NCBI RefSeq assembly: GCF_963921235.1
Contig: NC_086101.1
Span: forward strand, 15,686,001-15,750,000
From: Mobula hypostoma
Lineage: Eukaryota
Reading direction: 5' to 3'
DNA: 64,000 nucleotides
Numbering within the stretch: position 1 is the stretch's first letter; each line of letters opens with the position of its first letter. The notes under the pieces were generated by a model. The model was not told the origin of the DNA. It saw nothing but the letters and a program-made list of their open reading frames with translations, and did no database searches. A program made the position numbers and the translations under genes. Of the stretch, positions 4,943-64,000 are shown piece by piece.

Positions 4943-5091
4943 ATGGTAGCCTTGGTGTCAGGCATCAGCCCAGTGGATCCGATCGCCAGCTCCTGCCTGC
5001 TGTGCTCCGCCTGCCGCTTCTTGCTGATCAAACCGAAGCAGACGGAATGTGGCCACCGCTACTGTACCGCCTGCCTGGAGAATCTGTTCAG
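4943..5091 (+). CDS. TRAF coding exon 1 (RING N-half)
   Basis: [49 protein letters not shown]; C-x2-C...C-x-H-x2-C-x2-C RING pattern; donor TTCAG|GTGAGT in phase 2, as recalled for TRAF2/3. Confidence 0.9.
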
Positions 5092-8000
5092 GTGAGTCAG
5101 GGGGACAGAGGTGGTGGATCATCGCCGGGAGGTGGATAGAATTCTCAGAGTTTGTCTTTTTAAAAATATGTTTATTACATAACTTTAATCCATATTTTCA
5201 TAGTTCTCAAATTAAAACTTTATCATCCTTGTACAGGATGGATCCCCCCTTCCCCAGTAAGCCTTTTAATGCCCCTATTATGTCTAACAAGCCTTCTCCT
5301 ATGCTTCAAGGAGAAATGCACCATGACAGTAAGCCATTCGGGCCCAAAGAGCTTAGGTACAGGATAAGAAACAGTTAACTTCTTAGGTCGGAGTCACTTC
5401 ATCAGGACTGAGCAAGAGTGAAAACAAGTTTAGACCAGGTAGCAGAGAAGGTGAGAGAGGGATCTGAGCGGAACACGGAGGATTTGTGGGATGAAGTAAC
5501 GGACAGATAATCTCCATTGTAATCAGAATCAGTTTTAATATCAATGGCGTATGTTTTTAAATCGGTTGTATTGTGGCAGTAGATAAAATAAACTATAAAT
5601 TACAATAAGAGATACATACTGTATATAAGTAGTGCAAAAACAGAGAGCAAATAATTAATGAAGTAGTTCATGGTTGGTTCATCATCTGTTCGGAGATCTG
5701 ATGGCAGAGAGGAAGAAGCTGCTTCTAAAATGTTGAGTGTGGGTCTTCAGGCTCCTGTAACTTGTTCGTGATGGTAGCAATAAGGAGCGGGCATGCCCTG
5801 GGTGATAGGGTTCCTTACTGATGTATGCCCCCTATTTTGAAGCATCACCTTTTGAAGCCGCCCTCAGAGGAGGGGAGGCTAGTGCCCATGATGGAACTAG
5901 CTGCGTTTGCAACCCTCCGCAGCTTTTCCCCATCCTGTAATGTGTGGCTAATGTTGTAAGTCTGGGTACTGATGTGGAGTCAGAATTACTGGGACATACA
6001 TATTTTTAACTATTTATGGTTCTATTACTATTTATTATTTATGGAGCAACTGTAATGAAAACCAATTTCCCCCGGGATTAATAAAGTATGACTATGACTA
6101 CAATACCCAGCGAGCCGGAACATACAAGAGAAATCTGGTTGGCAAAAATGCCCCATCCTGAGACAAACAGAAAGAAGAAAAAAGTACCTAAAGTTAGAGT
6201 TTAGAATCTCAGTGATCAATATATGGACAGCGTGTGTATAGTTGAACCTATTTTCATTTTAAAATGCCTTCGGTGTCCATGCCTGCACCTACTGGTGAAT
6301 TCTCATTGTGAAAGTGAAAAGCAATTTTAGGTGTTGGAAACCCGAAATCAAAAATGAAGTAGAAAATGCAGGGAGCACTGAGAAAATAATGAGGAAAAAT
6401 GTTAATGCAGGGGTTCTCCTGATGCTGGGAATCCAGAGAAACACAGAAAATGCTGAAGGAACTCAGCATGCTGGCGGCATCTATGGAGAGAATTAAAGAG
6501 TTGACCTTTCAGGCCAAGACCCTTTGTCAAGATTCTCTGATTTAACATTTCAATTCAGTTTTTGTCCTGAAATGTTAACTCTGTTTCTCTCTCCATGGAC
6601 GCTGCCTGACCTGCCGAGTGTTTCCGGCATCTTCTGCTTTTATTTTGTCCCTAATTCTCACCTATAGTGGATAGTCTTCTTGAATCTTCGGTGAAGAGTG
6701 TGTTTACGGTGGAGTAGGATTTGGATGGGGACGTGGTCTGTTCTTGAGTCGGTGGAGTGATTTAGGCAGGGTAGTCGTTGGAAGTGGCGATGTGGCCGTG
6801 AGCCTGCTGCCCATATAGTTAGGGAGCGAAGAGGTTAATGATCTGCTGCTGAAGGACTTTCTGAGCAGCAAATTGAATGTGTTTAAAGATTAGATTAGCT
6901 TTAATGTACAAAAAAAAAACGTGTTGTTCCAACAGAGTCCAAAATGTGCTGGGAGGAGGCAGCCTACACATGTTGCCAAGCTTCTGGCATCAATGTGCCA
7001 TGCTGTTTCCAACATTTCAACAGGGTTGGCATAGTATCAATCAGCCATGATTACATGGCAGAACAGACTCGAAGAACTAAATGGGCTAAATCTGCTCCTA
7101 TGTCTTATGGTCATAGGAGAGTACAGCACAGAAACAAGTCTTTTAACCCACTAAGTCTTCGATGACAGTCAATCACCATGTACATTAATCCTACCCCAAC
7201 CCTCTTTTTATTTTCTTCCGTGCCCATAAACTGTCCCCAGACTCTATCACTCAGCCACCCAATGGGCCATTCTGCAGAGGCCAACTACTTATCCTTTCCT
7301 AAAATATAAGTCTATAGGGTACATGAATAGACTTGGCGACTCAACCCTGGTCAACCAGTCATAAAAATCAGAGCCCTGCAGCACTGACAAAGCCATCTCT
7401 CGATCATCCAACACCTATTTACAATAATCCAACACAGATGCTATATTATTGTCCCTTCAACACCTGTCACCACTCCACCCCATCTCGATTCTCCCTCTTG
7501 CATTCATGCTGGTGACCATTTTGCTCTCTTTTTGATCTTTCTGTCTTCACCCGTGTATTCATTTATCTTCGTCTATCTACCTCCCTCTATCTATCCACCT
7601 ACCTTCATCTATCTATCTACCTATCATAATTTTTAGGTACTGCTGCTGCTAAGTAACAAATTTCATGACATATGCCTGTCCAAAGATCCCGCTTTGGACA
7701 ATTTACAATGACTAACTAATGTACAATCTGCTAGGAGAAACCAGGTGAATTAATGATCCCTTGTCACATTTTCCTGTCCTTTCCCTACACCCCTGTCTTT
7801 CTTTAACATCTACAAATCAATTGACCTCTGTTTTGAACACAACAAACGAGGGAGCCTCCAACAGTCCTCCGACTGAGGGTGGAGAATTCCAGTGATCTCC
7901 CCTGAAGGGACTGAGTGCAGTTTGACCCCATCCGTGCACTGTATCTTCTCTGGACAACTGTACTTTTTCTTCGGTGTTCCTTTGGAAGGGAAGGGGCTTG

Positions 8001-11000
8001 ACTGTGAAAAGCAAAAACCCAACAATGGCTCAAACACTCACATACTGGGAACACCGAGTTAGAAGAAATGAATGTGAAAATATTAATTTTTTTCTGCATA
8101 TTTTAGGACAGGAAATGAAGCGGATTGCTACATTTGCCAAAAGAAGGTTCTTCGTTCCAAGGTAGGACCTCTTATGTGTTGTAAGCATCTTATCACTGTT
8201 ATTGCTGTTTGACGTATTTGCAAAGGAGGGAGATGTGGATTAGAGCTGGGCTGTGTTGTGGGGGTTGTAAGGAATGTTGCTTCATGGGCACTGTCTCCAG
8301 GACTGACTTATGGGCTGCAATCTGTCAGAGAACTCAGATGCTTATATTATTGGACAATGGACACCCAGGGATGGGTACAAGCTAGAATTTAATTGAGGCT
8401 TCGCAAGGTGTATTTGTAAGGTAATGGGTTCCAGGGATGAGTTACAGGCTGGAATTTAGTTGGTGAATTATACATAGAATAACAGATATTTGGTAGTGAG
8501 TTACCGTCTGGAATATAGCTGAGGAGCATAGGGGGATTATACATACAATAATAGATACCTGGGAGTGAATTACAGTCTGCAATCTAGTTGGGGAGTTCAG
8601 AGGACAGAATAATGGATTCCCAGGAGTGATTTAGTTAAGGAGTTCAGGAGGTTTATATATAGAATGCTGTACTTGGGAGTGAGTTACAGGGTAGAATTTC
8701 AAGAGGTTCCAGTAGTTTATACACAGAATAATGAATATTCAGGAGTGAATTACAGACGGATTCTAATTGTGGAGTTCTGGAGGTTTATATAGGGAGTAAC
8801 GGATATGGGGGAATATCCTACAAATTGGAATTTAACTGGAATTCCTACGTAAGGAATGAAATATCTGTGTTTTTCTGGAGAAGAGGGGAGATTCCCAGAG
8901 ACAGACAGTAGTGAGTCATTAGTGCATGATGTTGCTTTGGCACGGTTCGGAGTGGTATTGAAGGCAGCCTCCGCTGGCTAGTTCAGGAGGTCTGCACAGG
9001 CAGGGAGGATGAAGAGAAACACTGCGCTCCTGTGGCCACTCAGGGCTAGCGATGAACAAAGTTGATGTCATCGCTCTTGGCCCCACCAACTCATGATCTC
9101 CAGGAATTTCCGCACATCCCCCTCCCTCCTTCTGGGAATTTTAATAGGTAAAATACAAGGGGGAACTAAAACTTTCCAAGAGGTGACGGGAACTTGAGGG
9201 ATGGAAAGTTTTGCTTTGCTGACATAGGCCGTTCATGGGACTTGGTGGTCATAGAGCATTTGTGGTATAGAAGGAGGCCCTTTGGCTCATTGTGTCTGTG
9301 CTGCTCAGCTGAGTAGCATTGTGGTCGTAGCCCTTTAAGTTCACATCTAACTACTATTCCATTGTAGTGAGGGGTTTCGGATTCACTCAACTTTTCTGCT
9401 AGAGAGCTCCAGAAACCCTACCATTCTTGAGGCAGAGAAACTCCTCCTCTCATTTATTCTAATTCATTTAGTGATTACCTGGGATATCTGATTGCTGGAA
9501 AGATGTGGAGACTTTGGAAAAGGTGCAGAAGAGGTTTACCAAGTTGGATCAGAGGGTGCAGACTATAAGGAGAGGTTGGACAAAATTGGATAGTTTTCTC
9601 TGGAGCGTCAGTGGCTGATTGAAGTCTCAGAGGCAGAGATAGGGTCAGCGAGCACTGCAGCATGGAAACAGACCCTTCGGCCCATCTAGTCTATACAAAC
9701 TATCATTCTGCCAAGTCCCGCCGACCCACCGACCCGCACCTAGATCGCAGTTCACCGTGCCCTTCCTGTCCAAGTACTTATCCAAACTTCAAGTAGACAG
9801 TCAGAATCTTTCCCCCAGGGGAAAAATAAAATGTCAAATACTAGATAGGCACTTAAGGTGAGAGATTCAAAGTTTACAGCAGATGTGTGGAGGAGAGTTT
9901 TTTCTGCACAGAGTGCTGGGTTCCTGGAATGGGCTCCCAGCAGTGGTGGTGGAATAGTGATGTTTAAGAGGCCTTTAGAAAGACACATGGATATGCAGTG
10001 AATGCAGGGATATGGGTCCTGTGCAGAGTCAGGTGAGATTTACTGGGTAATTTAATTTGTATCATGTTTGGTGGGCCACAGGGCCAGTCTTGTTCTATGT
10101 TCTAAAGCTCTCAACCAGGGGAAATTGGTCCTTTATTCAATCATGGTTCCATATAATTTTCTACATGGGATTTAAGCCTCTCTTCAGCCCCCTCTGTTCC
10201 AGAGAAAACTCCATCCTAACCTATCCAATTTGTCCTTGGAGCTTGGATTTTCCAGCCCTAATAAGTCCCCTCCGTATGCAATCACGTCGTACCTGTATTG
10301 TGCCCAACGCTGCTCCTGTACTCACAGCATGGCCAAAGAAGCACGTGCAAAGAATGCTGGAAACACTCAGCAGGTCAGTCAGCACCTATGGAACGAGAAA
10401 CAGTGAACATTTCGGCTGGAAGACCATTCATCGGCTAATACTGATCAATGCTCTTTGACCTGAACTGCTTCTCTCTCCGCAGATGCTGCCCAACCTGCTG
10501 AGTTTCCCCAGCATTTTCTGCTTCTTTTTCAGATCTCCAAAATTTGTGTATTTTTATATGCAGTCCTAATGTGTAATTGGCCAGAATATATAGGGGCAGA
10601 ACTAGGCCATTTGGCTCTTTGAGTTTGCTCCACGATTCAAATCCAGCTTTTTTTCACTTTCATTCTCGACCCCCTCCTGTGAACCCTCAACCCCCTTACT
10701 GATCAGGGATTTATCAATCTCTGCCTTAAATACACCAGAATGACTTAGCCTCCACAGCCCTCTCTGGCAAGAGATTCTCCACCCTCTGGCTGATGAAATC
10801 CTTTCTCCTTACTGTTTTAGTCCTTTTATCCTGAGGCCATTCCCTTGGATTCTAGACTCTCCTACTAAAGGAAACATCCTTTCCATCTCTACTCTATCCA
10901 GGCCTTTCGGTCATAGGATTAAGGTAGATGGACAAAAATCATGGCATGGACAATGTGGGCGGAAGAGCCTGCTTCCGTACTGTATGACTCTATGACCCTC

Positions 11001-14000
11001 TGTGTTGTCAGAGCCGCCTTCTTACATACACAGATACATAGCAGCAGAGGTCCAATTGGCAGCAAGAAGCTGCAGGGAACGAGGTTTCCACCATTACCTA
11101 ACCTCTCGCGTTTTATCCACGCTGCAGGTTTACCTGGACAGGGCAGCGGAGAATGACGCCTACGTCACAAAGATTCACTGCACGGCTCACTTGGAGGGCT
11201 GTGACTGGGTCGGTTCGCTGCGGAACTACCTGGTAAGTCTCTGTGCTGGGTGGGGGTGGTGGGGTATGGACTGAAACTCCCAGAGGGGATGGGATGCAAG
11301 GAGAAAGGGGGCCGGAGGAAGTAATACCAACTCCTGCCACTAGGTGGCCAGCAGGGACTGCCAGTGGAGTCCACTGGGTCCACATGCCCGCAGGGTTCGA
11401 AACCGGTGGGAATGCGGGAGTGATTCAACGGGTCTCCAGCTGAAATGGGAGGAGGGGCAGCCCGCTTGTAGCAGGTAGTCCTGCTGTCTCACAGATCCTC
11501 ATTGGGATTGATCCTGACTTCTGGTGCTGTGTTTATGTGTGTGTGTGTGTTTTTAGTTCTCTCTCAAACTCCCACATCAGTGGGTCGGTGTGTTAATCAG
11601 CCACTGTAAATGGCCTTACTGTGAGGAGGTTGGAGGAAAGTATGAGGGGTGGGGTTGTCAGATTTAAATTCTTTACAGGGAGAGTGATAGGCCTATGGAA
11701 TGCATTGCCAGTGGTGGTGGTAGAGGCAGAGAGATCAGATGTCTCCCCGGTACATGTTACATGAATGATAGAAAAATGGAAGCATATGTAGGAGGGAGGG
11801 GTTAGATTGATTGTAGAGTAGGTTAAAAGGATCGTGGGCTGAATGGACAGTACTGTTCTGTATTCTATTTTCTATAAGTGGAATAAAGTCAAAGACTAGA
11901 GTTGAGTTCATTGTCACATCCACAAGTACACTTAGGCACAGGTGCAGTGAAAACTTTCCCTACAGCAGCCTCACAGGCACGTAGCATCAGATAAACAGGA
12001 TTCACAGGAGGAACAAAATTATAAACATAAATTATACATGAAAGAACGGACAAAAGGTCCATTGTAGTGCTGGGATTGTTTTGAGAGCTGACAGAGAGAC
12101 AGTGGGTCGAATATCCTCTATCTGTGCCGTGACGAGAAGAAAACTGAGAAATTCACCCCTCTACTGATCGAAAAACAGCAGATCACCTGCCGTATCAGTA
12201 ATAGTGGGAGCTTACTGTGCTTCTGTCTTCCAACAAGTACCTGCTGAAAACTCATGGGTGTTCCCGGCAAGCCCAACAGTAATGCCAGAGATGATGACCT
12301 CCAGAGCATTTCAAAACTCTAACCCTAACTCAAAATCTCATCACCTGGTCTGCAGAGCAGGTAGAACCGGTCCTTCCGAGAGATACACTCTCTTTAGAAC
12401 AGAGATGAGGAGGAATTTATTGGTGATTCTGTGGCACTTACTGCCACGTACGGCTGTGAAGGCCGAGTCAGTGAGTATATTTAAAGCAGAGGTTGATTGG
12501 TACTTCATTAGAGAAGGCATTAGTGATTAGCATTACCCCTAGTTGGGCACTGGGGTGGACTCATTGGGCACACAATCCCTGGCACAGCGGCAGCGTGGTT
12601 CGCATAGAACACAACCTTTTACTTGTGTAGATATGAGTTTTATACTTATTGATCATTTTTGGTCTCTCTCTTCCCTCTGCTTTTCTCTTTTGTGCTCTTC
12701 CTCATCTTTGTTTCTCTTTTTCTCTGTTTCTTCCTAACTCTCTCTCCTTCTCTTAATTTATACTCCTTCCTAAACACTTTTCTCTATTTTCACTCTCTCA
12801 TTTCCTTACACTTTCTTTCTTTCTATTCTGTTTTTCTTTCTCTTTATTTCATCCATTCTTTTTCTATCTGTCCTCTCTCGATTATCCTTTCCTTCTTGCT
12901 CTCTCTTCTTTTGCTTTTTCCTCTTTCTTGCTTCGCCATGCTTTTTCTCACATTCTTTCCCTCTCCTCTCTCTCTTTTCATCCTTCCTATTTCATTCTCA
13001 TTCTCTCTTTCCCTCTCTCATTTATTTTCCTTGATTTCACTTTTCCCTACTTTCTCTCTTTTCTGTCTCTTTCTCTCTCTCCTTTTCTTGTTCTCTCTCT
13101 CCTCATTCATTTTCTTTATCCCACTCTTATTCGCTCAACCCCTCCTCTCTTCTCCCCCTCCCCTCCTCTCTCTCTTTGTCTTCCCCCTCCCCTCCGCACT
13201 CTCCCTGGCTTCTCTCTCATGCAGCGTACACACCGAGCACAGTGTGGTTTCCAGGTCCTGCCCTGTGCCAATGTGGCATTTGGCTGCGAGGCTGTCGGCC
13301 CCAGGAAGGACATGTTGGTTCACGAGACCCAGCAGTGCGAGTGGCGGATGGAGCGTTGCCCCCGTTGTGAGACGTTCTGCATCCACAAGCTTCTGGAGGT
13401 GGGGTGTGTGCGCTGGCTCTCAGCTTCAAAACCCAGTGCTGTAGTGCCGTCCCAAACTACTTCCTCGGTGCAAGAGCTAAGGGAAGGTGATGGGAATTTT
13501 AGAAACAGACCAGGTTGGGGAAAACCAAGGAAGTTCCAGAGTTTGGGAGCTAAGTTGGTGGAGGCGTGGACTTCAGTGGTGGAGTGATGAAACTCGGGGA
13601 TGTATAGAGATAGAGACTGCGAGTCAGAGAGGAGAGAGAGTGTCTCCGGACAGACAAGGTGGAGAAATGAGTGAGAGTAGGGAAGGGAGAGGTGGGAGAG
13701 AGGGAAAGGGTTGGAATGAGAAGGGAGGGAGATGGTGGAAGGTGAGGGATGTGGGGGGAGCAGCACAAGATGGGAGAGAGGGTGGAGGGTGAATGAGTGG
13801 GGGTGAGAGAGGTGGAGGAAGCTGGAAGAGATAGGGGGTAGGGTGAGGAAGCAGAGGAGAGAGAGGAGTTGGGGAAAAGTGGGAGGTGGGGGTGGAGGAT
13901 GGGTGAGGGGTTGTGGAAGGGGGAGGGAGGTTGCCTAGGGTCAAGGAGGAAAAGAGAGGGCTCCGGATGAGGGGGACAGAGGAGGGAAGTGAGAGATAAG

Positions 14001-17000
14001 GCAGAGGAGGTGGTAGGGTGGGGAGAGGGGGAATGGGAGCGAGAACAGATAGGGAACCTGTGTGTCACACTGCCACAGCACCAAGGCGTGAGGTGGGAAT
14101 CACAGGGCAATGGAGTTCTGGGTATCGGGGTTCTAGACACTGCGGGTTAGGAGACTGGGTCGGAGGAAGTAGGAATGGAGGGGTGAGAAATGACTGGGCA
14201 AGGGTACAGGGACCAGGAGTCCAGCATGAGGGGACCCTGGTGCTTGATCCTGCTCGCATCCCTTTTTAGTTAACCGCACCCTGAAGGGCCCTATTCCCAA
14301 CCCGACGGCCCTGCCTCCGAGTCCTTGTCCAAGCGGTAACGTTACTGACCCTCCCCCCACCTCTCCCACACACATGCGTCGTGTACTGTGTCCGTCTGCA
14401 GCCTATAATACAGTCGACCTCCTGTCTCTGTTTTCCAGGACCACATGGCAACGTGTGGAAAACAGGAGAGCTGCCCTCTCTGTGGCCAGGCCGACTTGAC
14501 AAAGACGGAGGTAAGAATCCATTAATGAGAGATCCCTGCACGGCCACCACTCTGGCCCTGTAACTTCCTGGGTACTGTCTGTCTGGAGTTTGCACGTCCT
14601 ACCTGTGACCATGTGGTTTCACCACCACCCCCACCCTCTGTGGTGGTCAGGTGGGGGGTGGGGGGGGGAGGCGGGTAAGTGTAGGTGTTGATTGGCTTGT
14701 AAGGATGAATAGGTTACAGCGAAATAAATGGAGGATTGGGTCAGATTGGTTTATCTGAGAGCTAGTATAGCGTCAATGGGCAAAATGGCCCCGCTTCTAT
14801 GTCACAATAAATATAAGAATGTGATTCCTTCAGGGAGGGGATTAGGTTGGATTGAATGACATGCAAGCTAGTATGGAGTCAATGGGTTGAATGGCCTCTC
14901 TTCTATGCCACAAGGAAGATTCCTTCAGGGAAGTGCATCTGCCTTCCGTTTCCCGTCGGAACATTCCCCGTGTGACGCCAGACCCAGCAATATGATTGGC
15001 TCTGGGGAAAATGGGGATAGATAATAAATACCAAAGTTAAACTTGTGTTTCTTGTCGTCTGCGCAAGTATGTCCAGGTGCAAAGAAAACTTGTATCAGCA
15101 TCACAGGTACATAATGGCTGGCACAACACTTTATAGTGCCAGTGACCCGGGTTCAATTCCGTCGCTGTCTGTAAGGAGATTGCATGCTTTCCCCGTGACT
15201 GCGTGGGTTTCCTCCTGGTTCTCCGGTTGCTTGCCATATTCCCAAGATGTTAGGGTTAGGCTTAGTGAGTCATGGGAGTTTTCCAATCACCACCACTTCT
15301 TCAGACTGCGTTGATTGTTGATGCAAACAATGCATTTCACAGTTTAGATGCAACGAATAAAGCTAATCTATAATCTTTATACCAGGTAGGCAGTAATCAC
15401 AAGAAAAACTTAAAATAATTATAAACTATACATGAAAGGTCACAATTAGAACAAAAGAGGTCCATTATAGTGCAAAGTGGTCATGGTGTTGCTGTGTTGA
15501 GGTAGTGATGAGGGTTGTGCAGGTTGGTTCAAGGACCGAATGGTTGAAGGGAAGGAGTAGCTGTTCTTGGACTTGTTGATGTGGGACTTCCGGCTTCTGT
15601 ACCTCCTGCCCGAGGCAGCACCTTCTGTAGGTACTCCTGAATGGTGGGGAGGGATGTACCCGTGATGTACTGGCCAGAGTCCACTACTCTGCATTTGAAT
15701 AGCATGACAGAGCAGGATGTAACCAGTCAGGACACTTTGAATGATACATCCCAGAATGAAACCAATGGCAGCCTCTATTGTCCCATGGGTGGTGGGGTTG
15801 AGCTGCCTCCTTGGGGAAACCTTTGGCTTCTTGAGACGGCATTATAGATAGCGATGTAAATATCCTGTGAGATGTCAGAGGAATTTGACCTGTTTCGTGT
15901 AAGTGTAACAGTTTGGATCACTCTTGCTGACGCAAACCCTTTACATTTATTTCTCTCTTACAGTTGGAACAACACTGTGACCCCCTCCATGGCAACTGTC
16001 CCAAGGTGAAGGTGGCCTGTCCCTTTAAGGATGTCGGCTGTCTGGAACAGGTTAGTATCCTTGTGTGCACGTCAGCTGATCTCCGCTCCGAAGCCCAGGT
16101 ATGAAGTGCTTCTGAGTGGACACAGAATCAAATGGCACTGCAGAATCAGAATCAGATTCATAATGTTGTGAAAGTTTTTGCAAGACGTAAAATTTGCTAT
16201 AAGTTATGAAAATACATAATTAAATAGTGCCAAAAGAGGAGTATCAAGATTGCGCTCGTGGCTTCAGAAATATGATTGCAGAGGGTTCCTAAAATGTCGT
16301 GTGCTCCTGTATCCCCTCCCTGATGGTAGAATCAGCTTGTCCCGAATGGTGAGGGTCCTGCGCAGTGATGCTGCCTTCCTGAGGCATCGCATCTTGAAGA
16401 CGTCCCTGATGCTGGGGAGGGTCGTGCCCATCGTGGAGCTGGTGGAGTCCACGACCGTCTGTAGCGTCTTTCTGTCCCGTACAATGGGGCCTCCGTCCTG
16501 GGCGGTGATGCACCCAGTCAGAGCGCTCTTCACCGTGAGTCTGTAGGAATTCACTAGGGTCTTTGGTGACAGATGAAATCTCTTCAGACTCCTAACGAAT
16601 TCTAGCCACTGGTGATTGTATCAATGTGTTGGGTCCAGGACAGACCCTCTGAGATGTTGAATCTAGGAACGTGACGCGGCTCATCCTTTCCACCGTTGAC
16701 CCCGCCCCGCCATCACTTGGCCTTGCTGACATTGAGTAGCGTAGAAGCGACACTAACTGCATCTCACTCCCTGTACGCCTCCTCCTACTGGCCCCCTCTG
16801 ACCCTCAGTGTCTGTGTTGAACACAATTATAGCCGATCTGTCTGTGTAATCCATTTCCCTCCATTCCCTATTTGTATTCATTTATCCAAAAAAAAGTGTG
16901 TTAAAGCCCCTACTTGTATCTGCCTCTGTCACTACCCCAGCAGGCCATTCCATCCCTGGCTGTAAAAATCCCCTCAATTTAAATGCACGTAAATTGACCT

Positions 17001-18283
17001 TCGACCCTGGGAAGTAGATTTTGGCTGGCTACTCAATCTATGTCTCTCATAAATTTCTAAACCTTTACCACGGTCTCCTCTCAGCCACTGGTCTTCCAGA
17101 GAAAGTTACCCAATTTTGTCCAACCTCTCCTGACAGCTCATACCTGCTAAGCCAGGAAGCATCCTCGTGAAGTTCTTCTACACCCTCTCCACAGACTCCA
17201 GGTCTCCTCGCCCAGAACTGCGCATGATATCCCCAAGTGAAAACCGTTATTCAGTTTCCAGACTTTTATACAGAATTCCCTGCCAATATTAACCGTTTCT
17301 CTCTCCACAGAGTTGCGTGTTTTTATTTCGGATAGACTCTGATGTTCCTTTGCTCTTTTGTTTCTCCCACCCTGCCCCCTCAGTTTCACCGGGAGGATCT
17401 GAACGAGCACCTCCGAGTTGCCCAGCAGACTCACCTCCTGCAGGTCCTGTCCCTCGCCACCAGCCTGAGATCCGAGAGAACCTGCGGCGGGGACGCGCCC
17501 CTGGAGCCCGCTGAGAAGGCCGGGAGGATGCTGACGGCCGAGCCCTCCAGGGAGTTGGACGGCAACGCCGAGCCAGAGCCGGGAGTTGCCGCGGACCGGG
17601 GCCTGCAGGCCCTGGAGGGCCGGGCCGACGGCCTGGAGAGGTCGGTGCGCAGCCTGAACGGGGAGCTGGACCGCTACGCCCAGGTGATCGAGGCACTGCA
17701 GCAGAAGTGCCTCCACCTCGAGCAGACCATTCACGCCCTGCAGAAGAAGCCAGGACTGCGCTCAGCAGAGCTGTCAGCGCAGGCAGGCCTGGCTTTCCCC
17801 ACCCCGCCCCTCAGCACCAACGGCGTCCTGGTCTGGAAGATCAAAGACTTTTCCGCGAAGATGGCGGCAGCCAAGGCAGGACAGCGGCCGTCCTTCTACT
17901 CGCCGCACTTCACCACCCACCCTTTCGGCTACCGCCTCTGCTGCCGGGTCTACCCCAACGGCGACGGCGCTGGCAAGGGCAGCCACCTCTCCCTTTTCCT
18001 GGCGCTGGTGCGGGGCGACTATGACGAGGTTCTGCCCTGGCCCTTCCGGCAGAAGGTCACCTTCCTGCTGCTGGACCAGGCCGGCCAGCGGCACCTGCGG
18101 GAGTCCTTCTCGCCCGACCCGCTGAGCAGCTCCTTCCAGAAGCCGCGGAGCCACATGAACGTGGCCAGCGGCTGCCCCACCTTCGCCCGGCACGAGCTCT
18201 TCCAGAAGGGGCCCAGCCAGTACCTCAGGAACGACACCATCTACATCAAGGTGATGGTGGATCCCATGGGACTGCAGCTGTGA
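4943..18283 (+). CDS. TNF receptor-associated factor, divergent TRAF3/5/2-like (whole coding span, ~495 aa recovered plus a probable missing exon)
   Basis: Six exons with GT-AG boundaries encode RING, TRAF zinc fingers, coiled coil and MATH/TRAF-C in the canonical order; the last five join in phase 0. Confidence 0.93.
5520..6110 (-). mobile_element. Rex1/Babar-like fragments in TRAF intron 1
   Basis: Reverse complement of 'cctgaagacccacactcaacatt...aagctgcggagggttgcaaac'; ends in an (ATGACT)n tail. Confidence 0.5.
7560..7626. repeat. Degenerate (CTAT/CTAC)n microsatellite
   Basis: 'tctatctacctccctctatctatccacctaccttcatctatctatctacctatc'. Confidence 0.6.
8345..8850. repeat. Degenerate ~55-70 bp minisatellite, ~8 units
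   Basis: Recurring 'aataatggat..ccaggagtga(g/a)ttacag..tggaat.ta.ttg.ggagttc..g.ggtttata.a.ag'. Confidence 0.7.
11128..11232 (+). CDS. TRAF exon (post-RING linker, first Zn finger start)
   Basis: ctgcag|[35 protein letters not shown]|gtaagt; 105 nt, phase 0-0; resembles TRAF2 AFPDNAARRE...GCTWKGTLKEY. Confidence 0.88.
12610..13220 (+). repeat. ~600 bp CT-rich polypyrimidine low-complexity tract
   Basis: Almost purine-free on the + strand, ending at the acceptor of exon 13225. Confidence 0.9.
13225..13398 (+). CDS. TRAF zinc-finger exon
   Basis: atgcag|[58 protein letters not shown]|gtgggg; 174 nt, phase 0-0. Confidence 0.9.
13610..14045 (+). repeat. ~430 bp GA-rich polypurine low-complexity tract
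   Basis: Dominated by GGA/GAG/GGG runs. Confidence 0.85.
14439..14510 (+). CDS. TRAF zinc-finger exon
   Basis: ttttccag|[24 protein letters not shown]|gtaaga; 72 nt, phase 0-0. Confidence 0.88.
15110..15370 (+). mobile_element. tRNA-derived SINE (V-SINE-like)
   Basis: Pol III B-box-like GGTTCAATTCC at ~15151, then 'ctgtaaggagattgcatgctttccccgtgactgcgtgggtttcctcc'. Confidence 0.65.
15964..16050 (+). CDS. TRAF zinc-finger exon
   Basis: ctcttacag|[29 protein letters not shown]|gttagt; 87 nt, phase 0-0. Confidence 0.88.
16130..16720 (-). mobile_element. Rex1/Babar-like 3' fragment
   Basis: ORF 16264-16554 (-) '...[13 protein letters not shown]...RKTLQTVVD...[19 protein letters not shown]...LPSGRGYRS'; (ATTCTG)n tail. 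Confidence 0.7.
17384..18283 (+). CDS. TRAF terminal exon (end of Zn finger, coiled coil, MATH/TRAF-C domain)
   Basis: ccctcag| then 299 aa + TGA; contains [72 protein letters not shown]. Confidence 0.97.
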   Translation, partial: FHREDLNEHLRVAQQTHLLQVLSLATSLRSERTCGGDAPLEPAEKAGRMLTAEPSRELDGNAEPEPGVAADRGLQALEGRADGLERSVRSLNGELDRYAQVIEALQQKCLHLEQTIHALQKKPGLRSAELSAQAGLAFPTPPLSTNGVLVWKIKDFSAKMAAAKAGQRPSFYSPHFTTHPFGYRLCCRVYPNGDGAGKGSHLSLFLALVRGDYDEVLPWPFRQKVTFLLLDQAGQRHLRESFSPDPLSSSFQKPRSHMNVASGCPTFARHELFQKGPSQYLRNDTIYIKVMVDPMGLQL

Positions 18284-23828: not shown

Positions 23829-24563
23829 TGTAAAAAGAAACACACAGAAAATACTGGAGGAACTTCAGTCCTGAAGAAGCATCTCGGTCCTAAATGCTAA
23901 CTGTTTTCTCTTTTCTGTAGATACTGCCTGGCCTGCTAATTTCCTCCAGCATTTTGTCTGTGTTGCTTTGGATTTCCAGCATCTGTAGATTTTCTCTTGT
24001 TTGTGAATCCACTGTGTCTAATACAGTATTATATCTATAAAAATGGTATATGTGTGCAGTATAGAAATATTATATTTATCATTTGCACAATTCGTCATCA
24101 GTATTTATTTATTTACTTATTTATGGAGATAATGCCTAGAATAGGCCCTTCATGTCGTGCCACACAGCAACCCCCGATTTAACCCTGTTTATGTATAGAT
24201 TTTCATAAATTCTATTGTATTTCTTTATCTTTGCCGGCAGGAAGTTGAATCTCAAAGTCATATATACTTTGTCATGAATGGGGCAGGTGGAGTTAGGCCT
24301 GTCAAGGTCTTAAGAAGTAAGGCTAAACGATAATCCACCCAGTGATGTGTCCTCCGTTGGACTCTAAATGGAGCGTTTGAGGGACTGGAGGATGCAGTGG
24401 TAATGCAAATGTTGAAGTCCATCCCAAAGGGTGATGCAGAGGGGCAGCTTTCCTCTGATGCAGATGGTCATATAGGCACTTCAGACCCGAGGAAGGGTCT
24501 CCACCTGAGACGCTGACTGCCCATTTCCCTCCACAGGTTCTACCTGACCCAGTGAGGGGTCCT

Positions 24564-24675
24564 TCAGCACCTTTGTGTGGTGTTGGGTTTTCCAGCGCAT
24601 AGCGCAACACTGCCCCCCGCTGGCCGGCACCCTTTCACTGCAACTCTGTCCTCTACCGACGGGAGTGAAGCACTG
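24564..24675 (-). CDS. NCR3-like copy A, candidate cytoplasmic/terminal exon
   Basis: The polypyrimidine acceptor cttttcttctctctggtccag| (24675) gives TVLHSRR* in phase 1; the alternative tag| (24652) gives KDRVAVKGCRPAGGSVALCAGKPNTTQRC*. The segment is conserved in the paralog at 51782-51873. Confidence 0.45.
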
Positions 24676-25392
24676 CTGGACCAGAGAGAAGAAAAGCACA
24701 TCTCACTTTGTCTCTTTTCAAGGTTTAACAGTTCAAAGTACATTATTATTATCACAGTATATATACCACATGCAACCCTGAGATGGAGATCGTTGCAGGC
24801 AGACACAAAACAAAGAAAAAACACACTAGAATCCACGATAAAAAAAACAAAGACCTTCAGACAAGCAATGTGCAAAAAGAAAAGAATAAACTGCAAATAA
24901 TAAAAATTGACACACAGAACATGAACTGCAGAGTCCCTGAATGTGAGCCCACGGCCAAAGATCCAGTTCAGTGCTGAGAACCTCACGGGGTGGTGAGCTG
25001 AACATCAGTTGGTCTTTTACCATCGACCTTGACACCTTAACTTTTTAAATCTGACTTGTGCATAAATCGGTTAAGCATTGGTTCATTTCCTGCTCTTGGT
25101 CCTGGGGTATGCTGCTTCAATCCGGCCCAAAGTCCACTCCAGCAACGGCTGCTGTGGCCCAGCTGCATTCTTGTGGGTCCGAGTCATTTGGGTGTACTTA
25201 AAGCAGAACTGACATGTTCTTGATTGGTTTTGCTGTCAAAGGTTACGGGGAAGGCAGGAGGACGGGGTCGCGAGGGAAAAGAAAACACCCAATACAGAAT
25301 GGTGGAGCAGACTTGATGGGCCGAATGACCAACTCCTACTATGTCTTATGATCTTAAACTGATCGGAGAGGTAAAAGATCAAATGCTATTAC

Positions 25393-25506
25393 TTTCTGCT
25401 CTGAGGGTTTTGCTATGAAACAGGATGCTGCAGAGCAGGATGCTCCCTTGTATCCCAAAGGCCGCTAACAGGATCACCAGGTGAATCACGATGGCTGTCA
25501 GTTTGC
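25393..25506 (-). CDS. NCR3-like copy A, transmembrane exon
   Basis: ctcccccctcag|(R)KLTAIVIHLVILLAAFGIQGSILLCSILFHSKTLRAE|gtaata; 114 nt, phase 1-1; same length and donor position as in the paralog. Confidence 0.85.
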
Positions 25507-26174: not shown

Positions 26175-26789
26175 TGGTGAAATAATTCCTGTCACTGCCA
26201 CACCCCCTCCTCCCAATTCCAGGACAGAAAGCATAGGGAAGTTGCTCTTCCAATAATTGTATAGGATGACCGAGAGGTGCTAAAATCACATCCAGCGTTG
26301 ATCTTTGAATAACATTTGTCCCAGTCCCACACTAATCCCATTTATTTTCCTATTAATTATACTAATAACTGATCCTCCCCACCTTCCTTTCAAATCCCCC
26401 GAGTTTCTACCATTTCCCAAGGGAGTAATTTACAGAATCAACTAAACCACCAACCCACATGTCTTTGCGATGTGGGAGGAAACCAGAGCACCCCAAGGTG
26501 AGGGTTGGCCACACTGACACAGGAAGAATCCATTGAAAATAGGATAGGACAGAGAGGGAGGAGGACAGAATGTGACCCACTGCCCACCACGTCCCAAGGG
26601 GGAGAGGACAGTGTGTGACCCACTGCCCCACCTGGTCCAAGAGAGGAAGGAGGAGTGTGTGACCCACTGCCACTCTTCTATAATCTGCACACTGAGCCAA
26701 TCATTGTTGATGGGTTGATAAGTATGTGATCTCCAGCCAGTCACCCCAATGTAATTCTTCTTATCTTCAGTCTCCCATCTACAGAGACT

Positions 26790-29368: not shown

Positions 29369-29698
29369 GTGTGTGACTCACGGTCAGCCGTACACCCTCT
29401 CCGATTTCCACGCCAATCCCGTCTATCCGTACTTTGCAGTAATACATTCCAGAATCGCTCTCCCTCACGTCCACCAGCTTTATGGAAACTTTGAATGAAT
29501 CCTCCTGGTCAGGCCCAAGGATGCGCCCTGCAAACTCTGCCGTCCCGTTGGAGACTTCGGATGTGTTCCGGTACCAGCTGTAGAACACGGTGTCTCCAGA
29601 GTGATTGGCATTATGGCTACAGACCATGAGGACCGTTTCACCCTCACCTGCAAATATACTGGACTGGCCTTGCGTAACTGTGAAGCTCTTGCTTTTTC
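29369..29698 (-). CDS. NCR3: NKp30/NCR3-like receptor copy A, V-type Ig exon (paralog of a multigene family)
   Basis: cccactgcag|GKSKSFTVTQGQSSIFAGEGETVLMVCSHNANHSGDTVFYSWYRNTSEVSNGTAEFAGRILGPDQEDSFKVSIKLVDVRESDSGMYYCKVRIDGIGVEIGEGVRLTVSHT|gtgagt; 330 nt, phase 1-1. B-strand C, C-strand W and DSGxYYC are present. EVSNGTAEFAGRI and GIGVEIGEGVRL parallel human NKp30 EVRNGTPEFRGRL and GLGVGTGNGTRL as recalled. Confidence 0.88.
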
Positions 29699-33713: not shown

Positions 33714-33957
33714 CAACACACTTCAAAGTTGCTGGTGAACGCAGCAGGCCAGGCAGCATCTCTAGGAAGAGGTACAGTCGACGTTTCAGGCCGAGACCCT
33801 TCGTCAGGACTAACGTCAGGACGCAGGGTCTCGGCCCGAAACATCACTGTACCTCTTCCTAAAGATGCTGCCTCGCCTGCTGCGTTCACCAGCAACTTTA
33901 ATGTGTGTTGCTTGAATTTCCAACATCTGCAGAACTCCTCGTGTTTGCGTTGAATGA
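33714..33957. mobile_element. Palindromic Penelope-like terminus insertion inside the L1-like element
   Basis: ~100 bp inverted arms (33714-33812 vs ~33815-33910); flanked by the direct repeat TATTAATAG (33705-33713, 33958-33966). Confidence 0.8.
33775..33812 (-). ncRNA. Minimal type I hammerhead ribozyme motif
   Basis: - strand TAGTC-CTGACGA-AGG GTCTCGG CCT-GAAAC-GTC-GACTG has an intact CUGANGA/GAAA core, stem II, palindromic ACGU stem III, GUC cleavage triplet and stem I. Activity is not demonstrable from sequence. Confidence 0.7.
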
Positions 33958-50680: not shown

Positions 50681-51781
50681 CCATAGATGCTGCCTGACCT
50701 GCTGAGTTGCTCCAGCATTTTGTGTGTGTTGCACAGTTTTATGGCACTGCAGTAATATTGGCCATATTTTAATTTGCTCTTTATTTCATTTAAATACCCT
50801 TTGTAATTTGGGGACCGCTTCCACTAACACCTCCGCTCCATCTGCCAGAAGTGGAACTTCCAGGTGGCCAAACATTTTAATTCCATTTCCCATTTTAGGT
50901 CCAACATGTCGGTCGATGATGAGCAGCACCTTATATTCCATGTAGGTGGTCTCCAACCTGATTCCCTCAGTAAAATGGTAGTTTGTCCTTTTCCCATGTT
51001 TTTTCTATTTCCATAAAACATTGTCTAATTGGGGCAAAATGGTCCTGATGTGGTCCAACTAAGCAGAATTCACTACATGTAATGCAGTATTGTATTGAAA
51101 TATAATGTTAATGCATATAAGAATAATATGCATATATAATAATATCATACATATTATTTGCACCGTTTCTACTGACAGAAGGATAAAGGCGTGTTATTGG
51201 CACCTTAAAACCTGTTTCTCCAGGCGGATGGGGCTCGCCAGCCATGGTTGGCAGCTCATTCAGGAAAAAGTAAAACTCTGATCTCAAACCTCCGCTGCCT
51301 TGCCCTCTACCCACTCATAGAGAAGGCTTCGGGAATAAACCCAGAGGGAAAAATCTAGAGCTGGAGTCCCGAAGGCATTCCACTATCGAGCTGACAGATT
51401 TCTGGTACCAAACTGAGTTCTATGCTGACTGGCAACTCCTGCGATGTTTCTGGTACCAAACTGTATCGGCCTCTGCCGTTCCTTTGGATTCATCAGATGC
51501 ATGGAGAGGGGGAGCTTGCTGCATGGGCAACAGCTTGCTCTCTATATTGTACTGCCCTGGTTTGCTTATCTAGATAGCTAGGATGCATTATCCATGGTCA
51601 ACTCTGTCTGATGGAGGCCTCAACTCAACTCAAAGTCCATCCCAAAGGGTGATGCAGAGGGGCAGCTTTCCTCTCATGCAGATGGTCAAGTGGGCACTTC
51701 AGACCCGATGAAGGGTCTCCACCTGAGACACTGACTGCCCATTTCCCTCCACAGGTTCTACCTGACCCAGTGAGAGGTCCT

Positions 51782-51873
51782 TCAGCACCTTTGTGTGGTG
51801 TTGGGTTTTCCAGCGCATAGCGCAACACTGACCCCTGCTGGCCGGCACCCTTTCACTGCAACTCTGTCCTCTA
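51782..51873 (-). CDS. NCR3-like copy B, candidate cytoplasmic/terminal exon
   Basis: Paralog of 24564-24675. Tandem acceptors cag|tag| (51873/51870) give (I)EDRV... or (K)DRVAVKGCRPAGVSVALCAGKPNTTQRC* in phase 1. Confidence 0.4.
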
Positions 51874-52439
51874 CTGACGGACCAGAGGGAAGAAAAGAAC
51901 ATCTCACTTTGTCTCTTTTCAAGGTTTAACAGTTCAAAGTACTTTATTATTATCACAGTATATATACCCATATGCAACCCTGAGATGGAGATTACTGCAG
52001 GCAGCCACAAAACAAAAAAAAAGCACGGTAGAATCCATGATAAAAAGATCCTCACAACAAAGGCATTCAAACTTCCACAGTGCGAGGAAAGAACACATTG
52101 TGCAAAACAGTAAAAAAAAAGTAACAGATAGAACATGAACTGCAGAGTCCCTGGAAGTGAGTCTACGGCCACAGAGCCAGTTCAGTGCTGAGACAAGTAC
52201 ACTGAACTGAGTATTGAGTTGAACACCTCTTTGTCCTTTGCCCTCAGCCTCCACACTTTAATCTTTTAAATCCCGTTCGGCTCTTACGTCGGCTAAACAT
52301 TTGTTTCATTTTTCGCTGCTGGGCCTGGGGTCTGCTACTTCAGTCCAGCCCGCAGTCTGCTCCAGCCGTGGCTGCTGCAGTCGTACCTGCATTCCTGAGA
52401 GTCCAGCTTGCTGAATCCTTCAGGATACCGCAATAATGC

Positions 52440-54096: not shown

Positions 54097-54098
54097 AT

Positions 54099-54132: not shown

Positions 54133-54334
54133 TTACTGTTATTTATTCACTTATTGTTTCTTTCTATATTATTATGTATTACATTGAACTACTGCTGCTA
54201 AGTTAATAAATTTCATAACACCTGATTCAAAGACGCAGCTCCCAAAGGGAAATTACAGGCTTCAGATTGCACTGTTCGTAGTCCAGAAAACATTTATTTA
54301 ATAGAATAGTTTTGTTTACATGCAAAAGTCTGCA

Positions 54335-57250: not shown

Positions 57251-57269
57251 CCTCAGTCAAGCTCCTATG

Positions 57270-60129: not shown

Positions 60130-60690
60130 TTCCAAATGTTCCTCACCTTTAAGGATATAAAGCATTAGTCAAAGAACATTGGCAGTGTTGTGTGCAGTTT
60201 TGGGCTCCATATCTAAGAAACAATGTGCTGGCATTGGGGAGGATCCAGAGGAGAATGACAAAACTGATTTGGGAATGAAAGAGTAAATGTATGAGGATTG
60301 CTAGCTCTGGGATGTACTCGCTGGAGTTGAGAAGGATGGTGGGGAGGGATCTTACTGACACTTATCACATACTGAAAGGCCTAAACAGAGTGTACGTGGA
60401 GAGGATATTTCCAATATTGAGAGAGTCTAGGAGTCACAGCTCAGATTAGATGGAGATAAGGAGGAGTTTCTTTAGCCAGAGGGTGGTGAATCTGTGGAAT
60501 TCATGTCATAGATGACTGTGGAAGCCAAGTCATTGGGTATACTTAAAACAAAGGTTGATATGTTCTTGATTAGTTTTGGTGTCAAAGGTTATGGAGGAAG
60601 GCAGGAGAATTGGGTTGTGAGGGGAAAAATCTCTCAATATGGAATGGCAGAGCAAACTCAATGGGCTGAATGTCTGAATCCCTCTATCTT
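60130..60690 (+). mobile_element. CR1 3' fragment
   Basis: 'gtgtgcagttttgggctccatatctaagaaa...agccagagggtggtgaatctgtggaattc'. Confidence 0.75.
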
Positions 60691-60737
60691 TTCTGATCCC
60701 AAACTGGCGATAGAGGTAAAGGATTCAGTCTCCTTAC

Positions 60738-60851
60738 TTTTTGCACTGCAGATTTTTCTACGAAATATGATGCTGATGAGTAGGATGCTCCCTTGTATTC
60801 CAAAGGCCGTTAACAGGATCACCAGGAGAATCGTGACAGGTTTCAGTTTGC
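60738..60851 (-). CDS. NCR3-like copy B, transmembrane exon
   Basis: ttctcccccacag|xKLKPVTILLVILLTAFGIQGSILLISIIFRRKICSAK|gtaagg; 114 nt, phase 1-1; clear paralog of 25393-25506. Confidence 0.85.
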
Positions 60852-61210
60852 CTGTGGGGGAGAAAACAACTCAAAAGACATGAGCACAAATGGGCCATTT
60901 GGCCCTTCGAGACTGGTGAAGCACGCAATGATATGGCAGCTGACCTGAAAGTGTTTAACCCCACTGGTGAAATCATTCCTGTCACTGCCACCTCCCCTCC
61001 TCCCAATTCCAGGGGAGAAACATTAAATTTATCAAAAACCGATCCTCTCCACATTCCTTTCTTATCTCCTCCACTTCCCAAAACACTGGGGCCAATTTTC
61101 AGCAATCAATTAAAAAAACTCAAATGTCTTTGGGATGTGGGTGGAAACCAGAGCACCCACTGTGGTTAGGGTTTGGCCAGAGTGTCACAGGGAGAGTCCA
61201 CTGAGAATAG

Positions 61211-61570
61211 GAGAGGACAGTGTGTGACCCATTGCCCCAACCAGTCCTGGAGGGGGAGAGGACAGTGTGTGACCCACTGCCCCAACCAGTCTTGGAGGGG
61301 GAGAGGACAGTGTGTGACCCATTGCCCCAATCAGTCCTGGAGGGGGAGAGGACAGTGTGTGACCCATTGCCCCAACCAGTCCTGGAGGGGGAGAGGACAG
61401 TGTGTGACCCACTGCCCCAACCAGTCCTGGAGGGGGAGAGGACAGTGTGTGACCCACTGCCCCAACCAGTCCTGGAGGGAGAGAGGACAGTGTGTGACCC
61501 ACTGCCCCAACCAGTCCTGGAGGGGGAGAGGACAGTGTGTGACCCACTGCCCCAACCAGTCCTGGAGGGG
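61211..61570. repeat. 45-bp minisatellite, 8 near-identical tandem units
   Basis: Unit GAGAGGACAGTGTGTGACCCA(C/T)TGCCCCAACCAGTCCTGGAGGGG; units abut with no spacers. Confidence 0.97.
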
Positions 61571-61579
61571 GAGAAGATA

Positions 61580-63660
61580 GACCATAGGACAACAGACCAT
61601 CAGACATAGGAGCAGAATTAGGCCATTTGGCCCATTGAGTCTGCTCCACCATTCAATCATGGCTGATCCTTTTTCCCGTTCCTCTGTCCCGTTCACCAGC
61701 CTTCTCCCCATAAGCTCTGATGCTGTGCCCAGTCAAGAACCTAAAAAGCTCTGCCTTAAATACACCCAACAACCAGTCCTCCACAGCTCCCTGTGGTAAA
61801 AAATTCCACAAGTTCACTACCCTCTGGCTGAAGAAGTTTCTCCACATCTCTGTTGTAAATGGACACCCTCTCTCCTGAGGCTGTGCCCTCTTGTCCCAGA
61901 CTCCCCCTCCATGGGAAACATTTCCACATCTACCATGTCTAGGGTTTTCAACATTCGAAAGGTTTTAATGAGATTTCCCTCTTCATCTTTCTGAATTCCA
62001 GTGAGTACAGACCCAGAGCCATCAAAAGTTTCTCGCATGATAACCCTTTCAGTCCTGGAATCATCCTTGTGAACTGTCTCTGAACCCTCTCCAAGGCCAG
62101 CACATCTTTTCTCAAATGAAGGGCCCAAAACTGTAGACAATACTCAAGGTGAGGCCGCAGTAGTGCCTTATAAAGCTTCAGCATCACATCTCCGCTGCTG
62201 TATTCTAGACTTCTTGAAAATGCCAACCTTGCATTTGCCTTCCTCACCACTGACTCCATCTGCAAATTAACCTTTAGGGTGTTCTGCACAAGGACTCCCA
62301 AGTCCCTTTGCATCTCAGATTTTTGGATTTTTTTCCCCCATTCAGAAAATAGTCTGCACATTTATTTCTTCTACCAAACTGCATGACCATGCATTTTCCA
62401 ACATTATATTTCATTCGCCGCTTTCTTGCCTAATCTCCTAATCTGTCTAAGTCCTTCTGCAGCCTACCTGTTTCTTCAACATTAGCTGCCTCTCCACCAG
62501 TCTTCGTATCATCTGAAAACTTGGCAACAAAGCCATCTATTCCCTCATCTAAATCATTGATATACAGCATAAACAGAAGCGGTCCCAACACTGAACCCTG
62601 TGGAACCCTGGCAGCCAAACCAGAAAAGGGTCCTTTTATATCCACTCACTGCCTCCTGCCAATTAGACAATGCTTGAACCATGTCAGTGACATTCCTCTA
62701 ATGCCACTTGGTAAGCAGCCTCGTGTGGAACCTCGGCAAAGGCCTTCTGAAAGTCCAAGCATACAACATCTACTGCATTCATTTATCTATCCTACTTGTA
62801 ATCTCCTCAAAGAATTCTAAAAGGTTTGTCAAACAAGATTTTCCCTTAAGGAAACCATGCTGACTTGGTGCTATCCTGCGTTGTGTCACCATCACCACAT
62901 TATTAGCAATTGACTCCAACATCTTCCCAACCACTGAGGTCAGGTTAACTGGTCTATAATTTCCTTTCTGCTCCCTTCCTCATTTCTTACAAAATGGAGT
63001 GGCGTCGGCAATTTTCCAGTCCTCTGGCACCATGCCAAAGTCCAATATTTTTTGTAAGATCATTTCTAATGCCTCCACAATCTCTATCACTAGCTCTTTC
63101 AGCAGCCTAGGGTGCAGTTCATCTGGTCCGGGTGAATTACGTACCCTTAGGTCTTTCAGCTTTTTGAGCACCTTCTCCCTTGTAATAGTAACTGCACTCA
63201 ATTCCCTCCCCTCACAACCTTCAATATCTGGCACGTGACTATTGTCTTCCGCAGTGAAGGCTGATGCAATATATTCATTTAATTTACCTGCCATCTCCTT
63301 GTCCCCCATTATTATTTCGCTGACCTCATTTTCTAGCAGTTCTCTATCCACTCTCACGTTTTACATACTTGAAAATGCTTTTACTATCCACTTTCATATT
63401 GTTTGCAAGCTTGCTTTCATATTTCATCTTTTCCCTCTGAATGACTCTTTTAGTTGCTTTCTTTTGGATTTTAAACGCTTCCTAATCATCAGTATTGCCA
63501 GTATTTTTTGCTTTGTTGTATGCCCACTCTTTAGCTTTTAAATTAGCTTTGACTTCCTTGGTCAGCCATGGTTATATTATTTTGCCTTTTGAGTACTTCT
63601 TTCTTTTTGGAATACATCTATCCTGCATCTTCCTTAATTTCCCCAGAAACCAGTGCTGTT
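61580..63660 (-). mobile_element. CR1 LINE (RT + 3' UTR), reverse orientation, internally deleted
   Basis: ORFs 62980-63357, 62430-62645, 61948-62361 (NSPGPDELHPR, PQGSVLGPLLFMLYINDL, RPHLEYCLQFW). Confidence 0.9.
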
Positions 63661-64000
63661 GCTGCTCTGCTGTCACAGTGTCATCCACTGCCCCACCCAT
63701 CCTGGAGGGTGAGGGGACACTGTGCGACCCACTGCCCCACTGTATCCCGGGGGGGGGGAGGCGAGTGTGTGACCCACTTCACCACCATTCCCAAAGGGGA
63801 AGAGGACAGCTTCTGACACACTGACCCACTTAGAACCAGAGTGATAGAGGAAAGTGGGTGACCCACTGCCCCGCCGAGTCCCAGAGGGGAGTGTGTGACC
63901 CACTGCCACTGTTCTATAATCTGCACACTGAGCCAATCATTGTTGATGGGTTGATAAGTGTGTGATCTCCAGCCAGTAACCCGAATGTAATTCTTGTTAT

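Follow-up and report, generated by a model that had tools for sequence, protein, structure and literature searches.

This analysis concerns a TRAF gene of the devil ray Mobula hypostoma and the receptor sequences that lie beside it. The stretch of DNA that was analysed, called the window below, is 64,000 nucleotides long (contig NC_086101.1, positions 15,686,001 to 15,750,000). It is vertebrate DNA, rich in fragments of long interspersed nuclear elements (LINEs). The TRAF gene occupies 4943-18283 on the forward strand as seven coding exons, with canonical splice sites at all of them. The exons were located by tblastn of a Hypanus sabinus protein named 'TRAF2-like' (P0001) against the window, and the splice sites were read from the DNA.

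4943-5091 (+): exon 1, with the start codon and the first half of the RING finger (100% identity to P0001 over 50 aa by tblastn; GTGAGT donor)
8107-8161 (+): exon 2, the final CxxC of the RING finger (tblastn, splice sites)
11128-11232 (+): exon 3, in which the zinc-finger region begins (tblastn, splice sites)
13225-13398 (+): exon 4, zinc fingers (tblastn, splice sites)
14439-14510 (+): exon 5, zinc finger (tblastn, splice sites)
15964-16050 (+): exon 6, part of the TRAF-type zinc finger (tblastn, splice sites, Pfam)
17384-18283 (+): exon 7, carrying the linker, the coiled coil, the MATH/TRAF-C domain and the stop codon (Pfam MATH, 3.5e-41; PDB TRAF3, 188 bits, TRAF2, 168 bits)

The spliced exons encode a protein of 513 aa that is identical at 513/513 positions to RefSeq XP_062903499.1 ('TRAF2-like [Mobula hypostoma]', P0364), which is encoded on a 199-Mb chromosome of this species. 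An earlier note on this DNA had reported a TRAF gene on the forward strand ending at 18283, and that coordinate is exact. Introns 3 and 4 contain long CT-rich low-complexity tracts (12660-14140) that give pseudo-open reading frames of 200-260 aa, rich in Ser, Leu and Pro, on both strands.

Pfam places a RING finger at residues 21-61 (PF21363 TRAF3_RING and PF00097 C3HC4 RING), a TRAF-type zinc finger at residues 163-223 (PF02176) and a MATH domain at residues 363-506 (PF21355, 8e-41; PF22486, 1.4e-37). In alignments all eight RING ligands are kept, as are the receptor-peptide crevice motifs R-x-Y, NGDG, SSSF and ASGCP when the protein is aligned with TRAF1, 2, 3 and 5. These motifs contribute to the peptide groove in the published structures of TRAF2 and TRAF3. 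Matched to solved structures, the MATH domain reaches 188 bits for TRAF3, 168 for TRAF2, 167 for TRAF5 and 164 for TRAF1 (E values of 1e-47 to 1e-54), and is close to none of them.

The codon comparison gives a ratio of nonsynonymous to synonymous substitution rates (dN/dS) of 0.23 against the sawfish and 0.19 against the sevengill shark. The ratio is 0.10-0.14 in the RING/zinc-finger and MATH parts, while the linker is relaxed. With dN/dS about 0.2 the TRAF gene is under purifying selection. It is an intact, selectively maintained gene possessing every part of a TRAF1/2/3/5-type protein, i.e. C3HC4 RING, zinc fingers, coiled coil and MATH domain. We note that residues 1-69, comprising the N-terminus and the RING (4943-8161), are identical in Mobula, Hypanus and Pristis and have two differences in Leucoraja, and are far more conserved than the remainder of the protein.

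Since all the TRAF parts are present and the residues of the peptide crevice are conserved, the protein most likely has the adaptor and E3 ligase function that is typical of the family. The coiled coil would trimerise the protein, generating a trimeric adaptor and E3 ligase with RING-dependent ubiquitin signalling. The MATH domain would dock PxQx(T/S)-type motifs in the tails of receptors, and the output would feed into pathways of the NF-kB/MAPK type.

Relatives of the protein were gathered by word-seeded protein searches, using the last exon and a full-length relative, and the statements that follow cover the matches listed. Among these the closest are orthologues from sharks and rays (56-91% identity), followed by a second group of shark proteins (45-53%), then by proteins of coelacanth, caecilians, salamanders, bichir, sturgeon, paddlefish and gar (40-45%), and then by short forms from squamates and turtle. 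The canonical TRAF2, 3, 5 and 1 rank last (29-35% identity). The squamate members (P0127, P0129, P0146 and others; L004) have a shortened architecture of only 362-371 aa, with RING and MATH and little zinc-finger region.

A maximum-likelihood tree was calculated for 57 sequences under LG+C20. The devil-ray TRAF falls within a clade of 30 sequences that has support of 100/100 and a stem of 1.05 substitutions per site. Its members come from sharks and rays (with two copies in sharks), bichir, sturgeon, gar, coelacanth, caecilians, salamanders, squamates and turtle; the signatures YPNGDG, HPFGY and SLFLA are the clade's own in the alignment. Branching inside the clade tracks the species tree, and the two groups from cartilaginous fish are sisters (98/87); the lineage duplicated once more in these fish. 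TRAF1/2 with lamprey (99/95), and TRAF3/5 with the TRAF3-like proteins of amphioxus and oyster (100/100), form separate groups in the tree. Hemiscyllium has a canonical TRAF2 (P0173) that lies in the TRAF2 clade in addition to a member of the 30-sequence clade (P0016), and Scyliorhinus has a TRAF3/5-type MATH protein (P0089) outside the clade in addition to a member (P0007). In the approximately unbiased (AU) test, forcing the clade together with vertebrate TRAF3/5 was rejected (p-AU 0.0005), while forcing it together with vertebrate TRAF1/2 was not (p-AU 0.165).

An orthologue of TRAF3 or TRAF5 is ruled out by the separate 100/100 clade and the rejected constraint. An orthologue of TRAF2 or TRAF1 is likewise ruled out, because the shark TRAF2 (P0173) is placed in the TRAF2 clade, apart from the lineage. 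The earlier note had taken grouping with TRAF2, TRAF3 or TRAF5 as the result that would speak against a separate paralogue, and the tree gives a separate clade at 100/100 instead. From the comparison of sequences we conclude that this is a distinct TRAF lineage of jawed vertebrates, for which we use the name MHC-TRAF, where MHC is the major histocompatibility complex. Its probable relationship is that of an MHC-resident sister to the TRAF1/TRAF2 pair, which belongs to the MHC paralogon at 9q33-34.

The features that the devil-ray protein shares with the canonical TRAFs are to be weighed against those that set it apart. The architecture of RING, zinc fingers, coiled coil and MATH is like that of TRAF2, and of TRAF1 except that the latter has no RING, and the crevice residues are conserved. 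By contrast, full-length identity to these proteins is about 31-35%, and the devil-ray TRAF has its own 100/100 clade and its own signature motifs. Human TRAF2 and TRAF1 are located at 9q34.3 and 9q33.2 respectively, in a region paralogous to the MHC. The MHC-TRAF lineage differs in lying within the MHC proper, and no mammalian member is among the matches listed; the human MHC is known to lack a TRAF gene. With TRAF3 and TRAF5 the protein shares its top MATH score (188 bits for TRAF3), the TRAF3_RING match, and a coiled coil and MATH domain contained in one large last exon. Yet its union with them is rejected, and the TRAF3-like proteins of amphioxus and oyster group with TRAF3/5 and not with the clade. 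The automatic RefSeq names ('TRAF2-like' and 'TRAF3-like') suggest a fast-evolving ray orthologue of TRAF2 or TRAF3, and the best MATH match to structures of TRAF3, together with the Pfam TRAF3_RING match, could be read in the same way. But Hemiscyllium and Scyliorhinus each possess a canonical-type TRAF besides the clade member, the 100/100 clade that is set apart includes bony vertebrates, the union with TRAF3/5 is rejected, and the neighbours of the sawfish gene (below) are genes of the MHC and not those of TRAF2 or TRAF3. We consider that explanation to be exceedingly improbable.

No mammal, bird, frog or teleost protein was found in the clade among the matches listed from the word-seeded searches. 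It is likely, and not proven, that the lineage has been lost in mammals, and apparently in birds, frogs and teleosts too.

Gene orders for the MHC of other species were taken from the supplementary gene tables of Veríssimo et al. 2023 (PMC10751288). The locus of the sawfish orthologue (P0002; CM019888.1, 5,869,553-5,904,324) coincides with LOC127586120, named 'TRAF3-like' (5,879,506-5,895,914). In the sawfish the order is DDAH2 - NCR3-like x3 - two uncharacterised genes - AIF1 - PRRC2A - uncharacterised gene - DDX39B - APOM - BAG6, continuing with FAM102A-like - TRAF - DDR-like - MRC1-like - histone genes - IER3 - TOR4A-like - FLOT1, and further on with ABCF1 - PPP1R10 - GNL1 - GABBR1 (PMC10751288). 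The TNF/lymphotoxin genes, C2/BF, CYP21, TNXB and HSP70 lie a few megabases upstream on the same chromosome (PMC10751288). The sawfish orthologue is consequently located in the MHC class III/framework region, and its distance to the three NCR3-like genes is 655 kb, with nine genes between.

A second TRAF-like gene of the sawfish is located between ABHD16A and NFKBIL1, with a FAM102A-like gene nearby and ABHD16A between the two (PMC10751288). On NC_067438.1 the two TRAF-like genes lie within 4.49-4.66 Mb and 5.81-5.90 Mb, each with a FAM102A-like gene just upstream. The pairing of FAM102A-like and TRAF-like genes suggests a local duplication of a FAM102-TRAF pair. The FAM102A-like neighbour of the sawfish TRAF is a point in common with TRAF1/TRAF2, human FAM102A being located at 9q34.

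In the reedfish the order is AIF1 - three uncharacterised genes - 'TRAF3-like' - DDAH2 (PMC10751288). This bears on the possibility that the lineage is an invention of cartilaginous fish, a local duplicate arising near the NKp30-like genes, with the bony members drawn in by their long branches. The long stem of the clade, the warning of long-branch attraction given by the tree program, and a duplication into two groups that is specific to cartilaginous fish would all be in keeping with this. Against it, the bony members have 40-45% full-length identity compared with 30-35% for the canonical TRAFs, they share the signature motifs, the internal branching tracks the species tree, and the reedfish 'TRAF3-like' gene is in class III. 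Such an origin is very unlikely. In our reading the ancestral home of MHC-TRAF is the MHC class III/class I-framework region.

The TRAF and the NKp30-like proteins come from identically long contigs in four sharks (white shark, basking shark, horn shark and small-spotted catshark), and the two kinds of gene are therefore on the same chromosome there. The earlier note held that linkage to NKp30-like genes might prove absent from other elasmobranchs, in which case its proposal would fail; the linkage is present in the MHC table for the sawfish, and on the same chromosome in these four sharks. The axolotl TRAF lies on a contig of 848.6 Mb, which is compatible with the MHC chromosome (coordinates beyond 809 Mb) and is not proof of it. 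The clade member of the gar sits within one V-set gene model, and a second V-set gene lies 5.8 kb from it in tail-to-tail orientation. At this locus (L001; CM082505.1, 40.12-40.15 Mb) the TRAF is enclosed by a 444-aa V-set gene model extending over all 27.6 kb; after the TRAF come long tandem repeats and, on the opposite strand, the 3′ end of a 268-aa V-set gene. No V exon was found inside L001 by which these V-set neighbours might be assigned to the NKp30 family. No annotated neighbour was found within ±10 kb of the TRAF gene in anole or sevengill shark, and no V exon was found within 10 kb of it in sawfish, sevengill shark or anole.

The receptor sequences of the window are arranged as follows.

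29369-29698 (-): NKp30-like V-set exon of VJ type, with an open frame and a J-like GEGVRLTV end (92% identical by tblastn to the V domain of Mobula paralogue P0209 that is nearest the membrane)
25393-25506 (-): transmembrane exon of the first NKp30-like unit, 114 nt, uncharged save for one His, in frame with the V exon (tblastn with P0209, 58%; splice sites)
26780-29220 (+): LINE reverse-transcriptase insertion in the intron between the V and transmembrane exons
60738-60851 (-): transmembrane exon of a second NKp30-like gene (tblastn with P0209, 79%; cag acceptor, GTAAGG donor)
51633-52404 (no strand assigned): segment duplicated from 24415-25180, 80% identical by blastn; part of the duplicated 3′ region of the two receptor units

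The V exon has a cag acceptor and a gtgagt donor and is in phase 1 at both ends. Its best match to a solved structure is human NKp30/NCR3 (E 4e-10), and Pfam V-set is matched at 1e-12. It encodes a non-rearranging VJ-type V domain closest to NKp30, by which we assign it to that family. A word-seeded protein search with the V exon gave no matches, and an exhaustive search then found the family. The latter gave the Mobula paralogues P0209 and P0208, with two and five V domains and 73-84% identity overall, together with shark proteins, some of them named 'NCR3-like', and a marsupial NCR3 (P0265). RNA sequencing runs share only 11-29% of the words of the V exon, and these matches probably reflect paralogues.

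The likeness to NKp30 extends to the VJ-type V exon and to the relatives in sharks and sawfish, which are labelled NCR3 and lie beside AIF1/DDAH2. A transmembrane arginine marks the activating human NKp30. The transmembrane exons of the window differ in having none, and the Mobula relatives differ in having two to five V domains and long tails with tyrosine motifs. Of the two units of the window, one is without a leader exon and the other is without a V exon. A complete NCR3 gene, with leader, V domain, charged transmembrane segment and short tail, was not found in the window. No convincing leader exon was found for the first unit by a scan for a signal peptide plus donor or by tblastn at low stringency, and no convincing small cytoplasmic exons were found by the latter or by scans for immunoreceptor tyrosine-based inhibitory motifs. 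Public annotation shows no gene in the 10 kb on either side of the Mobula TRAF. The first receptor unit could be a gene that annotation has missed, or else a relic.

The stop codon of TRAF is 7.1 kb from the first transmembrane exon and 11.1 kb from the V exon, the genes being tail-to-tail. The earlier note had read a first NCR3-like gene on the reverse strand in this arrangement; the orientation holds, the V exon is intact and a transmembrane exon accompanies it, but no leader exon was found and there is no public gene model. Its second NCR3-like copy was not borne out within the window, which contains only a paralogous transmembrane exon and duplicated flanks (25179-25633 matches 60525-60978), and LINE insertions separate the duplicated segment at 51633-52404 from that exon. 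Neither tblastn with the first V exon nor scans for immunoglobulin motifs nor blastn revealed a second V exon in the window; the V exons of the second unit must lie beyond base 64000. What had been called a tandem cluster is visible as two units, whose transmembrane exons are 35 kb apart, but cannot be seen in full within 64 kb.

These pieces reflect a lineage-specific expansion of the ray NKp30-like family around TRAF. Because sawfish, sevengill shark and anole have no V exon within 10 kb of TRAF, the adjacency of 7-11 kb is recent and is a product of the growth of this receptor family in rays. The idea of an ancient cluster of TRAF and natural killer receptor genes is thus upheld for an old regional linkage of TRAF and NCR3-like genes in class III, but not for the close adjacency. 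The regional linkage within class III dates from early jawed vertebrates.

TRAF and the NKp30-like receptors might alternatively constitute a functional unit, co-regulated or coupled in signalling, in which the coupling and not shared regional descent keeps them together. They are tail-to-tail neighbours here, V-set genes flank the gar TRAF, and both kinds of gene stay in class III in sawfish and reedfish. Yet no V exon is close to TRAF in sawfish, sevengill shark or anole, and in the sawfish nine genes and 655 kb intervene. Moreover the tail of Mobula P0209 has no clear TRAF-binding motif when inspected by eye, and the tails of the NKp30 family carry tyrosine motifs, which signal via other adaptors. 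We regard a functional unit as quite unlikely.

Taking these data together, we consider it likely that the window contains an intact member of an MHC-TRAF lineage that originated in the MHC and was lost in mammals, lying beside a recent expansion of NKp30-like genes in rays. The proposal of the earlier note, a TRAF paralogue linked to the MHC or its paralogon and lost from mammals, is supported by the tree, the AU test, the MHC table for sawfish, and the finding of no mammalian member among the matches listed. Several points weigh against this conclusion. The raw score of the MATH domain is nearer to TRAF3 than to TRAF2. The stem of the clade is very long and carries a warning of long-branch attraction, so that its sister group is uncertain. 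That mammals, birds, frogs and teleosts have lost the lineage is deduced from absence among the listed word-seeded matches. Placement in the MHC is shown for the sawfish, and by table for the reedfish, and is presumed for Mobula itself; moreover the membership of the reedfish gene in the clade is assumed from that of Polypterus P0125. The first NKp30-like unit, having neither leader exon nor public gene model, may be a pseudogene. Lastly, the function of the TRAF protein is deduced wholly from its sequence.

TRAFs are central adaptors of TNF-receptor, CD40 and innate signalling, and the textbook set of TRAF1-7 comes from mammals. The present lineage is a further one, well conserved from sharks to reptiles, that lies in the 'inflammatory' block of MHC class III of at least the sawfish and, probably, the reedfish. 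With it the reconstructed primordial MHC gains a signalling adaptor, and via TRAF1/2 and FAM102A at 9q33-34 it is a new marker gene for the model of MHC paralogons. It also raises the question of what pathway mammals gave up or re-wired on losing the lineage. In literature searches no publication emerged in which a TRAF lineage encoded in the MHC, or an additional one, is named or discussed, and the axolotl and newt MHC papers contain no mention of TRAF. The main text of Veríssimo et al. 2023 never mentions TRAF, and the rows of the table are uncommented (PMC10751288). The gene is already annotated, under misleading names, and a supplementary table that lists it has been published; the novelty lies in its recognition as a separate, MHC-resident TRAF lineage.

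A broader scheme can be drawn in which the ancestral class III region held a complete inflammatory cassette of TNF/lymphotoxin, a dedicated TRAF, NFKBIL1 and NKp30-type receptors. MHC-TRAF would then be the fourth of a set produced by the two rounds of genome duplication (2R) and distributed among the MHC paralogons, the others being TRAF1/2 (9q33-34), TRAF5 (chromosome 1) and TRAF3 (14q32), and would still serve MHC-linked receptors where it is kept. We put this forward as a speculation that is unlikely.

The 30 kb between the two receptor units is filled for the most part by L1-like and several reverse-transcriptase fragments, including L1-like ORF1 and endonuclease fragments on the forward strand at 31200-33240. 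Open reading frames at 33707-33979 mirror one another on both strands, which fits a palindrome. A tandem array with a period of ~45 bp is located at 61170-61650, where all six frames give repeated peptides, e.g. GQCVTHCPNQSWRGR. Relatives of this array are found at 26350-26760, where they are intronic to the first receptor unit, and at 63680-64000, where the window ends.

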